Assembly (NCBI RefSeq): GCF_002113885.1
Contig: NW_018404995.1
Coordinates: 395,248-459,247 of the forward strand
DNA from: Mizuhopecten yessoensis
Lineage: Eukaryota
DNA length: 64,000 bases
Direction: 5' to 3'
The notes below the pieces were generated by a model that ran no database searches, was not told where the DNA came from, and saw only the letters and a program-made list of their open reading frames with translations. A program made the position numbers and the translations under genes. Numbering within the stretch: position 1 is the stretch's first letter; every line of letters begins with the position of its first letter. Shown in pieces: positions 19,794-27,382 of this stretch.

Positions 19794-22700
19794 TCACGAC
19801 AGCCGCAAGGTAGTAAGATGCTTCCATGCACTCAGAGGACCCTTGTTGGGTTTGTATTGACAGTTGACACCATCAGAAATGAGACGTCCATCCTGCCTCA
19901 TCTCCTCGTACACATCTTTCTCCCACTTTGTGAAGCCCCATTTCTTTGACACGAAGATCTGAAAGAAACAAACAGAGCTGTGAGAATGCAATCAACTATA
20001 ATTAGTTTTATTTTATATGCCAACGTTAAAAGAATTTTATTATTCTTTCTCATCGACATGCATAATTACCGACTTTTTAAACAACAATGTCACCGAGGCC
20101 ATTTAACAAACCCACCAATATATGTGGGCCGATATAGCAGCCAGGGTGTTTATATTGCAGTAATAGAACGATCAAACTAACAACACATGACAGTTTGGAG
20201 CTGGTACTGCTTCATTTTAATTTATAAAGCATGTATCTCAAATATCCAACAAAATCAGGACTATTTCAGATGTGATTATATTACGAGGTAGTAGGAGCAA
20301 CACATAATACATAATACATAAAACAAAAGGGAATGGGTATTGTAGATTGAAAACAAAAAGCTGGTGTATTGACAACCCAAGGAAAAGTTTTAACTGTTGT
20401 GGTAGGCCTAAATGTCCTCCATCCCGCTTTCAACTTCCCACAAAGATGATACACTTGCTTCTGGAATAGCTATTCTTAGTTTTACAAAGACTACACATCC
20501 ACAAACATTGTCTTTGTTACTGAGGTTACGTATCAAATCACTTGATACAGTGAGTTGATATAGCGACCAAAGTGTTTATATTGCAGTATTGGAACGATCA
20601 AACTAACAACACATATCAGTTTGGAGCTGGTACTGCTTTATTACATTCAATCCTTGTGGAAGCCATTCATCTTACCCACTTAAGGCTGAGAGGTTTCATT
20701 AAACCAAGCAAGAACTACCTGAATCAAATATTTTACTTTTCATTTATTGGCTACTTTCTGCATTTCTAAAAATGGTATACAGAAAATGATGAATGTTTAT
20801 TCTTTCAATGCAAAAAGTTTATGGACCCTGCATAATTTCATTTTTCTTTTCACAAAGACCATTCAATTCACCACCACTAGAATAGTGAATTAATATAGCA
20901 AAGCATTATAATGCAGAGGTAAAACTATCAAACTAACAACTGGATATTATTTTAACTGGTATTGCAGCTATGCATACTTGCATTTTATTGCATTTTTTTT
21001 CGTTCTTGTGTCTTGAAACTTAACAATTTTAATTTTCATATAAATCCCTAAAGTAAGAAATAAATGTGTCACCGAGGCCATTTAACAAACCCACCAATAT
21101 ATGTGGGCCGATATAGCAGCCAGGGTGTTTATATTGCAGTAATAGAACGATCAAACTAACAACACATGTCAGTTTGGAGCTGGTACTGCTTTATTTTAAT
21201 TTATAAAGCATGTATCTCAAATATCCAACAAAATCAGGGCTATTCAAGAAATGATTATATTAAGGGGCGAGTACCTGAAGGTTGATAATAAGCACCATCT
21301 GTATCGACAGAGGCAGGATACCCACAGCTAAGGTGATAAGCCTCCTCGCCGTCCATACAGGTTTTGAACTCCCTAAATACACTTGCTTCTGGAATAGCTA
21401 TTCTTAGTTTTACAAAGACTACACATCCACAAACATTGTCTTTGTTACTGAGGTTACGTATCAAATCACTTGATACAGGGAGTTGATATAGCGACCAAAG
21501 TGTTTATATTGCAGTATTGGAACGATCAAACTAACACATGTCAGTTTGGAGCTGGTACTGCTTTATTTTAATTCATAAAGCATGTATCTCAAATATCCAA
21601 CAAAATCAGGGCTATTTCAGATGTGATTAATAGAATCTTCCCCTGCCCTGATTTCTGTTACACCCTCAAGGTAGGGGATGATTATTTTTCTCCCATCCTA
21701 ATATTTCAGTCACAGCTCCACCGACAGTAGTCTGCCATGTTTGTAAACAAAAACATGTGGGGTATGCATATCGTCATTCACTTTTGATGACGTCACAATT
21801 ACCGATGACGCATCTTAATGACATCACAATTGAACACATGCTAATTGGCACGAGGCTATCCCCCCCTAAAGGGTGGGGGGGGTGACAAGCTGATCTTTCC
21901 AGGCTAAAACGGGAGACACGCCTGTGAAGGGTGGGATATATTATGAAGTAGTTGGAGCAACACATAATTTATAATACAAAAGGGAAGGGTGGGGGGAATG
22001 GGTATTGTAGATTGAAAACAAAAAGCTGGTGTATTGACAACCCAAGGAAAAGTTTTAACTGTTGTGGTAGGCCTAAATGTCCTCCATCCCGCTTTCAACT
22101 TCCCACAAAGATGATACACTTGCTTCTGGAATAGCTATTCTTAGTTTTACAAAGACTACACATCCACAAACATTGTCTTTGTTACTGAGGTTACGTATCA
22201 AATCACTTGATACAGTGAGTTGATATAGCGACCAAAGTGTTTATATTGCAGTATTGGAACGATCAAACTAACAACACATATCAGTTTGGAGCTGGTACTG
22301 CTTTATTACATTCAATCCTTGTGGAAGCCATTCATCTTACCCACTTAAGGCTGAGAGGTTTCATTAAACCAAGCAAGAACTACCTGAATCAAATATTTTA
22401 CTTTTCATTTATTGGCTACTTTCTGCATTTCTAAAAATGGTATACAGAAAATGATGAATGTTTATTCTTTCAATGCAAAAAGTTTATGGACCCTGCATAA
22501 TTTCATTTTTCTTTTCACAAAGACCATTCAATTCACCACCACTAGAATAGTGAATTAATATAGCAAAGCATTATAATGCAGAGGTAAAACTATCAAACTA
22601 ACAACTGGATATTATTTTAACTGGTATTGCAGCTATGCATACTTGCATTTTATTGCATTTTTTTTCGTTCTTGTGTCTTGAAACTTAACAATTTTAATTT

Positions 22701-25700: not shown

Positions 25701-27382
25701 AATGATGGATACCTTCTGTCTTCCTGGGAACTTGAACTTTGCTCTCCTGAGGGCCTCAATAACTGCAGCTCGGTTGTTTTCCCTTGCACGACAGGACATT
25801 ATGGACTGGCCGATGCGCACACGGGCGACAGTTCCTTGAGGTTTACCATAGGCGCCACGCATCCCTGTCTGAAGCCTGAAAATTGTATCCCAATAAATCA
25901 GCAATAAGATAGTTTTCTGCACTAAAGCTGTAAACTTGAGAACTTAGAATGCATTAATATCGATATATATCAGAAGGCTCCCCCTGCCTCCCTCTGTTTA
26001 CTTTGGATGGAGCCTTTTTGTCTCATTTTGGAAGGAAACTTTCAGGTGTCAACTGTAAATTTTGTGAATGAGGCATAAATGTGAAATGGTTTCAATTGGG
26101 AATGGACCCCATTATTGGGTTAAAAAAGTCCTTAATACAAAAAAATATATGTAAAAATTGATTTTGGGGTTACAACTTCCAACTTAAAATTGGCAGTCGT
26201 GTTAAAATCAATTTGATGTTATTAGGGTTGTGTAATTCCATATTGGAGAAAAAAAAGCGTCTATTTATGTCTTTTTAATAAAAATAATGAAAAAATCCTT
26301 CAATGGTAATTACCTATCAGCTCCAGCACATGACAACATCTTGTTGATTCTGCAAACATGGAAGGGATGCACTCGCATTCTTAAATGGAAAGAGTCCTTG
26401 CCGCAGTTCTTCACAAGGTATTTGTTTGCACAGATACGGCTGGCTTCCAGTGCCTCAGATGACAACTGTTCCAACTCGTCAGACACGAGATGCACGCATA
26501 GTGAGAACTCGTCTACCAAGGCCTTCTTCTTGCCAAGATCAAAGATACGGATCTTGGAATCTGAATATCATCATTGAAAAATAAATATTCACAAAAGTCA
26601 AAATCCGACATAATAAAACCATTTAAATACATTTACCTATATATGAAGTTGTACAAACACTGAAAATATGAACAGCATTTTAACAAAATCACTAGATACA
26701 GTGAGCCGATATAGCGACCCAAGTTTTAATATTGCAGTATTGGAACGGCCAAACTGAAAAACATGTCAGTCTGGAGCTGGTACTGCATGAAACTTGACAA
26801 TACATGTACTATCTTTTTCATGTCAAATCCAAATTCAACACTTTAATACATTTTTTTTTGTTTTGTTAATTTACATATAATTATTTCCCCCCACACATAC
26901 ATTTCAATCTTATTCAAATTTGACAGGTTGGGATCTTCATTGACTTCAAAATATCGTCTTCAGAAACTGACATAACATGAACTGTTTACAAAGATAAACC
27001 ATGAAAAGCGCTGAAAGTAATTTCACAATATTATCCAGATCTGCTGTTTTGCTTACCTGGAACACCACGACAAAACCTTGACTTGGGGTATGGCTTGTTT
27101 TTACAATATCTGTAACTGGAAAACACACAAATATGAAACAACGTTAACGTTGTGCATGTTCAGTAGTAAAACTAGAACGAAGCTTTTATTTCGGCAATAA
27201 ACTGAGAAAAAACAACTGAATTGATGACATGTAGATAATCTGCAAAAGCGATTATTTACTGTTGAACCGGAATTATGGAAAATCCGTATTTTATAGTTAA
27301 TCTGGCTCTAGAAAGTTCATAACCAATAGACTTCTGTAGCCAAAAAACGTGAAACTTACCAACGAGCTGGTCGGCGCCCCAT
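19794..27382 (-). CDS. RPL10: 60S ribosomal protein L10 / uL16 (218 aa)
   Basis: Coding exons 27382-27360, 27115-27057, 26560-26314, 25875-25713, 19958-19794 (657 nt). Translation [37 protein letters not shown]...[27 protein letters not shown]...[20 protein letters not shown]. Confidence 0.99.
20085..20211 (-). ncRNA. Box H/ACA snoRNA copy (variant A), SNORA10/snR37-like 5' pocket
   Basis: Hairpin GCAGUA...UACUGC, H box AUAUAA, hairpin CACC..GGCUG...UGGCC..GGUG, then ACA-UUG. Confidence 0.8.
20512..20637 (-). ncRNA. Box H/ACA snoRNA copy (variant B)
   Basis: Same 5' hairpin, H box AUAUAA, hairpin ACU..GGU...ACC..AGU, ACA-AAG. Confidence 0.8.
21062..21190 (-). ncRNA. Box H/ACA snoRNA copy (variant A)
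   Basis: As 20085-20211; ends GGUGACACAUUU. Confidence 0.8.
21440..21562 (-). ncRNA. Box H/ACA snoRNA copy (variant B', 3-nt shorter apical loop)
   Basis: As variant B; H and ACA boxes intact. Confidence 0.75.
22177..22302 (-). ncRNA. Box H/ACA snoRNA copy (variant B)
   Basis: Duplicate of 20512-20637 at +1665. Confidence 0.75.
22727..22855 (-). ncRNA. Box H/ACA snoRNA copy (variant A)
   Basis: Duplicate of 21062-21190 at +1665. Confidence 0.75.
23105..23227 (-). ncRNA. Box H/ACA snoRNA copy (variant B')
   Basis: Duplicate of 21440-21562 at +1665. Confidence 0.75.
23842..23967 (-). ncRNA. Box H/ACA snoRNA copy (variant B)
   Basis: Third copy of variant B at +3330. Confidence 0.75.
24100..24753 (-). 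mobile_element. Helentron/HINE-like insertion with about 150-bp internal repeats
   Basis: Absent from paralogous units (catttctaaaaatgg). SubTIR-like atatgcccgtc / gatgagcatat, ccgcgg palindrome, ggacagacg tract, aaaaatcaaata units at about 24240, 24392 and 24543. Confidence 0.8.
25037..25165 (-). ncRNA. Box H/ACA snoRNA copy (variant A)
   Basis: Variant A with H box and ACA; GUGGGGUUG in the upper stem. Confidence 0.78.
25545..25678 (-). ncRNA. Diverged H/ACA snoRNA copy (variant C); ACA box not evident
   Basis: Intact 5' hairpin with CCAGCU/CGUUCC pocket, H box AUAAUA; 3' half diverged. Starts about 35 nt after the splice donor. Confidence 0.55.
26660..26787 (-). ncRNA. H/ACA snoRNA copy in RPL10 intron 3 (variant D)
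   Basis: GCAGUA-CCAGCU-CCAGACUGA...UCAGUUUGG-C-CGUUCCAA-UACUGC, H box AUAUUA, then GGUCGCUAUAUC. Terminal box uncertain (possibly AUA). Confidence 0.65.

Follow-up and report, generated by a model that had tools for sequence, protein, structure and literature searches.

The RPL10 locus and its intronic units

The window, that is the whole stretch of 64,000 nt of Mizuhopecten yessoensis DNA that was analysed, carries on its minus strand an RPL10/uL16 gene whose exon reconstruction gives a protein of 218 aa and GT-AG introns. A non-coding first exon was placed from the sequence at 27561–27590, with a donor near 27568 and a pyrimidine tract that may represent a TOP/TCT-like start; the same first-exon tract is present in Ylistrum RPL10. 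The coding exons, reconstructed from the reading frame and confirmed by RNA-seq, lie at 27360–27382 (with the ATG), 27057–27115 (RNA-seq joint 26560/27057), 26314–26560, 25713–25875 and 19794–19958 (with the stop codon). The third and fourth of these match PF00252, and the RPL10 exons are 91–98% identical to those of Ylistrum balloti. The last intron, estimated at 5.75 kb by the first-pass annotation, measures 5,754 nt (25712–19959) and is spliced from exon to exon, as 1,589 + 1,113 RNA reads cross directly from the donor at 25713 into the beginning of the last exon.

A motif scan of the window found 16 starts of a repeated unit on the RPL10 sense strand, 15 of which were recovered by covariance models, in agreement with the "about 16 copies" first proposed. 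The last intron holds nine intact copies, with both an H box and an ACA, and six decayed ones, whereas ten full-length copies had been counted there: the tenth (25554–25678) lacks the ACA. The sense strand of a single RPL10 intron thus bears at least two snoRNA units, which is the layout of an intronic snoRNA cluster. The copy announced in intron 3 (26664–26787) is present and retains its 5' hairpin and its helix-92 pocket undamaged, together with the H box AUAUUA, but its 3' pocket is broken and AUA replaces the ACA. It has zero depth in RNA-seq, intron 3 of Ylistrum RPL10 was found to contain no snoRNA copy, and the intron-3 copy is probably partly decayed.

All units of the last intron lie on the minus strand and are listed here in the direction of transcription. 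The half-decayed copy at 25554–25678 (without a 3' hairpin or ACA, but with its 5' hairpin, pocket and H box preserved) is followed by a short 5'-hairpin relic with approximate bounds (25440–25520), which was seen by the motif scan and missed by the covariance models, and by a decayed type C copy that has lost its pockets (25307–25433; alignment, covariance model 32.8 bits). Then come an intact copy of subtype B (25039–25165; alignment, fold, covariance model), a decayed type D copy with neither H nor ACA box (24830–24951; alignment, covariance model), an intact subtype A copy with both pockets matching 28S rRNA (23842–23967; alignment, fold, target pairing), an intact copy of subtype A', which has a 3-nt loop deletion and both pockets matching (23105–23227; alignment, fold), and a further intact B copy (22729–22855; alignment, fold). 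Beyond a type D relic (22511–22631; alignment, covariance model) and an intact A copy (22177–22302; motif scan, alignment) lie three units from an exact duplication, namely intact A' (21440–21562; motif scan, alignment), intact B (21064–21190; motif scan, alignment) and decayed D (20846–20966; alignment, covariance model). The array closes with an intact A copy (20512–20637; motif scan, alignment) and an intact B copy (20085–20211; alignment) whose end is separated from the 3' splice site by 127 nt. Within the window, subtype A occupies internal positions of the array only and the outermost intact copies (25165 and 20085) are both B. The nine intact copies comprise only five distinct sequences.

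The exact tandem duplication spans 20329–23677, with a period of 1,665 nt and a perfect repeat of 1,684 nt (20329–22012 = 21994–23677). It supplies 4 of the 16 units and carried along spacers, a transposon, a dead relic and three intact copies, so that part of the copy number is due to one very recent block duplication; without it, six intact copies are left, the unit number of Ylistrum. The duplication is probably real and an assembly artefact unlikely, as its junction (21909–22143) is found without a single difference in DNA runs X1 and X10, which come from different studies. The listed pieces of the duplicated block have about 1.5–2.3 times the single-copy depth. The exact copy number is not proven, because Logan contigs pop bubbles and 23650–23999 has almost no DNA contig depth. 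High-copy transposon-like sequence makes up about 1.2 kb of the last intron and includes an insertion in a spacer (24110–24730; contig depth adds up to more than 10,000, single-copy DNA having 7–14) and a MITE-like insertion recognized by its depth and loose ends (23319–23601), which is duplicated at 21654–21936.

Structure and predicted targets of the units

The intact copies fold as hairpin, hinge, hairpin and tail (z -3.2 to -4.7), as the first-pass annotation had described, while the copy at 25554–25678 gives a z of +0.5, its intact 5' hairpin and H box notwithstanding. The H box ANANNA of the hinge is kept in all five bivalve species compared (see below) with variable N positions, and the variants AUAUAA, AUAAUA and AUAUUA reported earlier all occur in the unit alignment, as do the three compensatory changes of hairpin 2 that separate A from B. 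An ACA triplet follows hairpin 2 in nine copies of the window and in 22 of the 24 copies of the cross-species alignment; in the alignment of the window units, the copy in intron 3 and the decayed ones lack it. Judged from its sequence, the unit encodes a guide snoRNA of the box H/ACA class without an Rfam family, and the anatomy of these multi-copy units supports the earlier view of a family amplified within RPL10 introns. Identification through Rfam, also envisaged at that stage, failed: no family reached its gathering score in the window, and RF00092 (SNORA63) had no match at E<=10 in the whole genome, where its 90-bit gathering threshold was not reached. Among the best candidates scored, every significant match of the unit in the genome falls in the RPL10 locus, so that no copy supporting a dispersed transposon, an outcome that would have counted against the first-pass annotation, was found elsewhere.

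Pocket pairing was scored at canonical spacing on part of the 28S rRNA of the same genome, the only target RNA among rRNAs and snRNAs that the scan covered. The 5' pocket (CCAGCU / CGUUCC) lies 15 nt ahead of the H box and pairs over 6+6 nt on the two sides of a helix-92 uridine. Subtype A also has a 3' pocket (GUCGCUAU / ACGU), 14 nt ahead of the ACA, that pairs over 8+4 nt on the two sides of a helix-89 uridine. Equally good matches were obtained in shuffled target text 1 time out of 300 for the 5' pocket and 0 out of 300 for the 3' pocket. The helix-92 target is 23 nt downstream of the A-loop U, and the helix-89 target is 101 nt upstream of the helix-92 one, a spacing equal to that between human positions 4491 and 4390. 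The helix-92 uridine is thus predicted to be the equivalent of human 4491 and the uridine 101 nt upstream that of human 4390, the human equivalents being set by their offset from the A-loop and not by alignment to the human sequence. The former is presumably also the equivalent of yeast 2944. Taken together, the snoRNA identity and both targets appear highly probable.

Two other assignments were rejected. For the 3' pocket, the SNORA16/snR46 site (human 4412) does not fit, being 79 nt from 4491 against a measured spacing of 101. In subtype B, the 5' guide and the shape of the 3' hairpin persist but the 3' match to 28S has been lost; an 8+4 pairing of this subtype's 3' pocket with 28S GAUCUUGG-U-GGUAG, one match among 20 registers, is unsupported because, by inspection, the Ylistrum B copies do not keep it.

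Conservation of the array among bivalves

The RPL10 introns of Ylistrum, Magallana, Tegillarca and Solemya contain 3–8 full-length copies each, and the comparison of orthologous genes called for by the initial hypothesis therefore shows a conserved, multi-copy unit in four other bivalves. In all five bivalves examined, one of which is a protobranch, several copies lie within one intron; this host intron is the last one in the two scallops and the oyster, intron 4 in the ark clam and intron 3 in Solemya. No unit was found in the RPL10 genes of abalone, limpet and octopus, nor any convincing homologue in about 60 metagenome loci. Lineage amplification of a guide, as originally suggested, thus holds for the multi-copy state of the five bivalves, but part of the scallop copy number comes from the recent block duplication.

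Pairing of the 5' pocket with its target amounts to 12–16 bp in the other bivalves, one Solemya copy excepted, and its right side has as many as 9 perfect bp in the oyster. Outside scallops, the right half of the 3' pocket pairs weakly (2–3 bp). In 24 aligned copies from the five species, pairing is kept in 89% of stem cells and double changes occur in 15 of 28 pairs, both well above slid controls. In the alignment of the two scallops, exons and units align but spacers do not, and subtypes A and B persist in both species. Internal copies are also constrained: differences between the copies of four older duplicated blocks fall at 5/500 positions (1%) in the units versus 48/779 (6%) in the flanks (Fisher p 2e-6, the block pairs not being independent), although gene conversion restricted to the units could mimic such constraint.

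Expression, processing and known systems

RNA-seq depth is 0–11x in the non-repeat bins of the intron versus about 2,000x in exons, reads being mapped on a 5,231-nt reference with one copy of the duplicated block. Reads do not stack at the unit ends, and these 150-nt paired, unstranded libraries miss 125-nt RNAs. The spacers of the five species share no motif, k-mers or RNase III-type hairpin above chance. For non-intronic co-hosted snoRNAs of higher eukaryotes, a 2025 paper describes the responsible endonucleases as unknown (PMC12508059).

The reading that best accounts for these data, to which a probability of roughly 0.6 is given as a whole, is that of a bivalve SNORA63/E3-like guide multiplied in RPL10 introns and yielding several monomers per lariat. 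Its mode of action and lifecycle could be as follows. The 5' pocket would place dyskerin on the helix-92 uridine beside the A-loop, and the 3' pocket of subtype A would place it on the helix-89 uridine. The unit would have no promoter of its own and would be co-transcribed with RPL10, in whose introns local unequal duplication would repeatedly multiply it, copies arising, decaying and being replaced, with several present at once in each bivalve lineage. H/ACA proteins would load on every copy in the pre-mRNA; after splicing, the protein-free AU-rich spacers would be cut internally and then trimmed, and one lariat would thereby give several monomers of about 125 nt. The release of several monomers per intron, taken separately, is considered somewhat probable.

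The main competing possibility retains the same guide but dispenses with internal cutting: loading would be incomplete, exonucleases would pass unloaded copies and halt at loaded ones, and each lariat would give one monomer or a sno-lncRNA capped by two snoRNPs, whose pockets could go on guiding. With more copies, the odds that at least one is loaded would rise, which accounts for constraint on all copies and requires no new nuclease. The spacers, which carry no conserved cleavage signal, agree with this, as do mammalian introns with two snoRNAs, from which sno-lncRNAs arise, among them SLERT with its H/ACA ends (PMC11028025). Against it, Drosophila H/ACA loci are generally clustered in introns, and animals therefore tolerate the layout (PMC3089462); multi-kb capped RNAs would also include transposon sequence and differ in length between species, and no capped RNA was seen in RNA-seq, which is a weak test. 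This explanation is judged unlikely. Still less credit is given to the proposal that one or two copies are functional and the others are passengers of a duplication-prone intron, homogenized by gene conversion without special processing. The exact duplication, which copied spacers, transposon and relic with the intact copies, the six decayed copies of the last intron, the variation of copy number and host intron among species and the RPL10 genes of abalone, limpet and octopus, devoid of copies, all fit it, but not the multi-copy introns of five bivalves out of five, the better conservation of units than of co-duplicated flanks, the maintenance of both A and B in two scallops or the fact that subtype A, the sole one with both pockets, is only internal in the window. 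Finally, a perfect repeat of 1,684 nt resembles a mis-assembly and true high-copy elements share the intron, so that a dispersed mobile element or satellite, or an artefactual array, had to be considered. This is hardly credible given the confinement of the best-scoring matches to the RPL10 locus, the covarying conservation across bivalves, the duplication junction found unchanged in two runs and the six copies that remain, as in Ylistrum, once the duplication is removed.

Release of several guides from one intron, as the preferred reading implies, would be cheap to test here because subtype A is internal only and can be distinguished by sequence from the flanking B copies. An extension of this reading, in which bivalves and at least one other animal routinely pack both snoRNA classes in single introns, with internal cleavage by a new activity that depends on neither a conserved motif nor a conserved hairpin, is put forward tentatively and is rather doubtful; if true, the rule of one snoRNA per intron would fail well beyond Drosophila H/ACA genes.

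The vertebrate SNORA63 gene is located in introns of EIF4A2, not RPL10. SNORA63 guides 28S 4390 and 4491 (PMC6984369), so the target pair predicted for the bivalve unit and its 101-nt spacing are those of SNORA63/E3 (RF00092), whose model of 130 positions is of similar length; as the Rfam model has no match in the genome, the likeness lies in target pair and length, and homology would be conjectural. This shared pair points to an old dual guide whose host gene has changed. The helix-92 uridine is also the target of yeast snR37 (PMC3542256) and human SNORA10/ACA10 (PMC2780460), neither of which matches the unit in sequence, the second target of SNORA10 being 18S-210. The best H/ACA match in Rfam is nematode ceN36-1 (RF01627), which is like the intron-3 copy in 5' pocket motif and 5' hairpin shape, at 24.8 bits and E 0.45, and likewise resembles three Tegillarca copies (22.9–25.1 bits); these scores are far below its gathering score of 48, the 3' hairpin is unaligned, and the RPL10 locus was not among the matches of a genome-wide search with this model. 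The locus adds an H/ACA family from bivalves that Rfam lacks, both of whose predicted targets fall in the peptidyl-transferase region. It also shows multi-copy intronic clusters kept from a protobranch to scallops and rebuilt in different introns. A literature search found no paper on mollusc intronic snoRNA clusters.

The first-pass annotation had contrasted this array with the one-per-intron layout of vertebrates. The multi-copy intron is real, but the contrast was overstated, this layout being the rule for Drosophila H/ACA snoRNAs (PMC3089462), whose loci are generally clustered, several per intron of a housekeeping host (PMC3089462; PMC11028025). The surprise is moderate because the layout is already known from flies and plants. 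Mammalian sno-lncRNAs such as SLERT likewise derive from introns with at least two snoRNAs, but the scallop has nine intact copies and not two ends. Drosophila H/ACA and plant intronic clusters likewise gather several snoRNA genes per intron of housekeeping genes, whereas in the bivalve array a single family has been amplified, and re-amplified in different introns of one host.

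RPL10 and the copies of the unit

The RPL10 (uL16) gene, on the minus strand, encodes a 218-aa protein from five coding exons, two of them carrying the PF00252 domain, separated by GT-AG introns. Its exons are 91–98% identical to those of Ylistrum balloti and 68–90% identical to those of oyster, which marks the animal as a scallop. RNA-seq gives ~2,000–2,700 junction reads per run for each of the two introns that precede the array intron, the last one (25712–19959). At donor 25713, 1,589 and 1,113 reads from the two runs pass directly into the start of the last exon (agreement 1.0), showing that splicing removes this 5,754-nt intron from exon to exon. 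At positions that are otherwise constant, the exon at 26316–26558 departs from most homologues: S replaces P in EFS, L replaces Y in DEL, S replaces G in EAS, and C replaces I/V/L ahead of RINK. The Ylistrum exon is 98% identical to it. At 7/7 mollusc loci, a RUN-domain gene, with a PX domain too in six, starts in head-to-head orientation to RPL10, some hundreds of nt upstream of it (~27590–27800 and beyond, + strand, in the window). The intervening sequence is, by eye, common to the window and Ylistrum, and the layout suggests a bidirectional promoter.

The ~16 copies proposed by the first-pass annotation correspond to 16 unit starts on the sense strand, and the H-box variants and A/B compensatory pairs that it described are both present. 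It had counted ten full-length and about five decayed copies: the five relics stand, but only nine copies carry both boxes, the tenth (25677) consisting of a 5' hairpin and H box. Its single intron-3 copy exists with a perfect 5' hairpin, but AUA replaces ACA and the 3' pocket is broken. The nine two-box copies, all in the last intron, comprise three identical A, two identical A' (with a 3-nt loop deletion) and four B in three variants, A being found only between B copies. Fold z-scores run from −3.2 to −4.7 for intact copies and from +0.5 to −2.3 for decayed ones. The array is a real feature, better supported than at first reading.

Within the array intron, 20329–22012 is exactly equal to 21994–23677, so that the duplicated block adds a relic and a single copy each of A, A' and B. 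In two runs, one the probable source and the other independent, a contig piece (21909–22143) crosses the diagnostic junction without any difference; pieces from the block, among those listed, show ~1.5–2.3x single-copy depth. The 20329–23677 duplication thus probably exists in the genome and arose very recently, although contigs are unable to prove copy number. The spacers hold very high-copy insertions, non-autonomous elements of two families (23319–23601, 21654–21936 and 24110–24730), that are also carried by RNA reads from other loci. Elsewhere in the window, 33823–51096 contains many minisatellites, with periods of 21–83 nt and as many as 24 copies, as well as 560 nt of N (45659–46218). 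In other invertebrates, exact kilobase-scale tandem duplications without the unit occur within or close to RPL10, as at L087:1661–4050 (period ~1,033 nt, three copies) and in Patella (L105:3310–5311; period 1,702 nt, two copies).

Predicted 28S targets

No Rfam family reaches its cut-off on the window; the best H/ACA match of the unit is nematode ceN36-1 (E 0.45), over the 5' hairpin only. The pockets were compared with the unmasked 28S of the same genome (~5 kb). The 5' pocket lies 15 nt before the H box and pairs over 6+6 nt on either side of the U in GGAACG-U-GAGCUGG. In A and A', the 3' pocket lies 14 nt before ACA and pairs over 8+4 nt on either side of the second U in GCGU-U-CAUAGCGAC. 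Each site is the best in the ~5 kb, and 1/300 (5' pocket) and 0/300 (3' pocket) shuffles match as well. The 5'-pocket target U, 23 nt after the A-loop U, is taken here, from the yeast modification map, to be yeast 2944 and human 4491; the 3'-pocket target U lies 101 nt upstream of it, an offset that makes it the equivalent of human 4390. SNORA63 (E3) is assigned both 4390 and 4491, and the 4491 element has been termed highly conserved (PMC6984369). Since the two predicted targets are this very pair, the unit is a predicted dual guide working like SNORA63/E3. The Rfam SNORA63 model (RF00092) finds no match in this genome, however, so that the unit is not filed as a member of that family. In subtype B the 5' match persists (with one G-U), as does the 3' hairpin, whereas the helix-89 match is gone; no other target in the same 28S is supported for the 3' pocket of this subtype. 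Subtype A is the only full predicted dual guide among the subtypes.

Evolution and proposed release of the copies

The unit is not dispersed genome-wide, a prospect raised by the first-pass annotation: among the best candidates scored, BLAST and two covariance models place it only in the RPL10 gene. When orthologous RPL10 loci, each adjoining the same RUN-domain gene, were searched with covariance models R1 and R2, multiple copies were found in four other bivalves: Ylistrum (last intron, six copies, representing A as well as B), Magallana gigas (last intron, three complete copies, a half copy and one relic), Tegillarca granosa (one in intron 3, three and partial copies in intron 4) and Solemya velum (seven in intron 3, one and partial copies in intron 4). 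The Haliotis, Patella and Octopus loci gave no copies. The last intron of Octopus bimaculoides RPL10 holds a single weak SNORA16-like match (L104:4938–5061; 25.1 bits, E 0.64, below the gathering score of 35), which may be another guide hosted by that intron.

Pairing holds in 89% of stem cells across 24 aligned copies, and double changes occur in 15/28 pairs; covariation scores 0.45, versus at most 0.13 in slid controls (the shuffle control is inflated by relatedness). In every species, one Solemya copy excepted, the 5' pocket retains 12–16 bp with its target; the 3' pocket keeps 6–8 bp in its left half and only 2–3 bp in its right half outside scallops. Oyster, ark clam and Solemya copies cluster by species (identity 91–96% within, 52–63% between), whereas those of the two scallops interleave, B copies of both grouping together. 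This pattern fits repeated local re-amplification, with an A/B split predating the two scallops.

Between the scallops, exons and units align and spacers do not. Four duplicated blocks of greater age in the window show differences at 5/500 positions in units versus 48/779 in co-duplicated flanks (p 2e-6, optimistic since pairs share copies), and units are also less divergent than flanks in most pairs from other species. This low divergence, together with the position of A only between B copies, favours use of the internal copies. Part of the similarity between units could, however, come from gene conversion restricted to them.

As to how such copies would be released, the favoured model, at a probability of about 0.6, is that H/ACA proteins load on each copy, that the unprotected spacers are cut internally and that trimming follows. 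Its main rival is trimming only, which would yield single monomers or sno-capped long RNAs from the intron; such RNAs are known in mammals (PMC11028025). The spacers show no long hairpin that returns from copy to copy or from species to species, and no 9-mer common to all five species; the 7- and 8-mers that they share are no more than expected by chance, so an Rnt1/Drosha-type cleavage signal is not evident in them. Two RNA runs gave 0–11x over non-repeat intron bins versus ~2,000x on exons and no reported stacked ends; both are unstranded 150-nt paired libraries, in which a 125-nt RNA would not be visible.

Comparison with other snoRNA arrays

The array layout is apparently not peculiar to RPL10 of this genome. 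Its RPS6 region (L094, G000:C3748:922500–932400) contains a unit with C/D boxes, the core motif of which is found 16 times within 9.9 kb; this unit is complementary to 28S helix 92, directly beside the 5'-pocket target of the RPL10 unit. The RPL10 last intron of another animal (L089/L090, two haplotypes of ENA ERZ25767047; 11679–20045, 8.4 kb) holds ~18 copies of three families that differ from the bivalve unit: two C/D-like, one with seven copies here, an eighth in the preceding intron and an 11-nt complement to 28S, the other with six copies, and one H/ACA-like, with 5–6 copies and a 3' pocket seemingly complementary to 28S GGCUCU-U-CCUAU.

The bivalve unit is a conserved, unannotated H/ACA family with predicted targets, maintained across bivalves as multi-copy intronic arrays. 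No paper on mollusc intronic snoRNA clusters was found. Animals mostly have one snoRNA per intron, intronic clusters being a recognised class (PMC11028025). What is new is thus the bivalve family, the kind of gene and the intronic-cluster layout being already known: Drosophila H/ACA loci are generally clustered (PMC3089462), and the H/ACA copies of bivalve RPL10 likewise lie together in introns.
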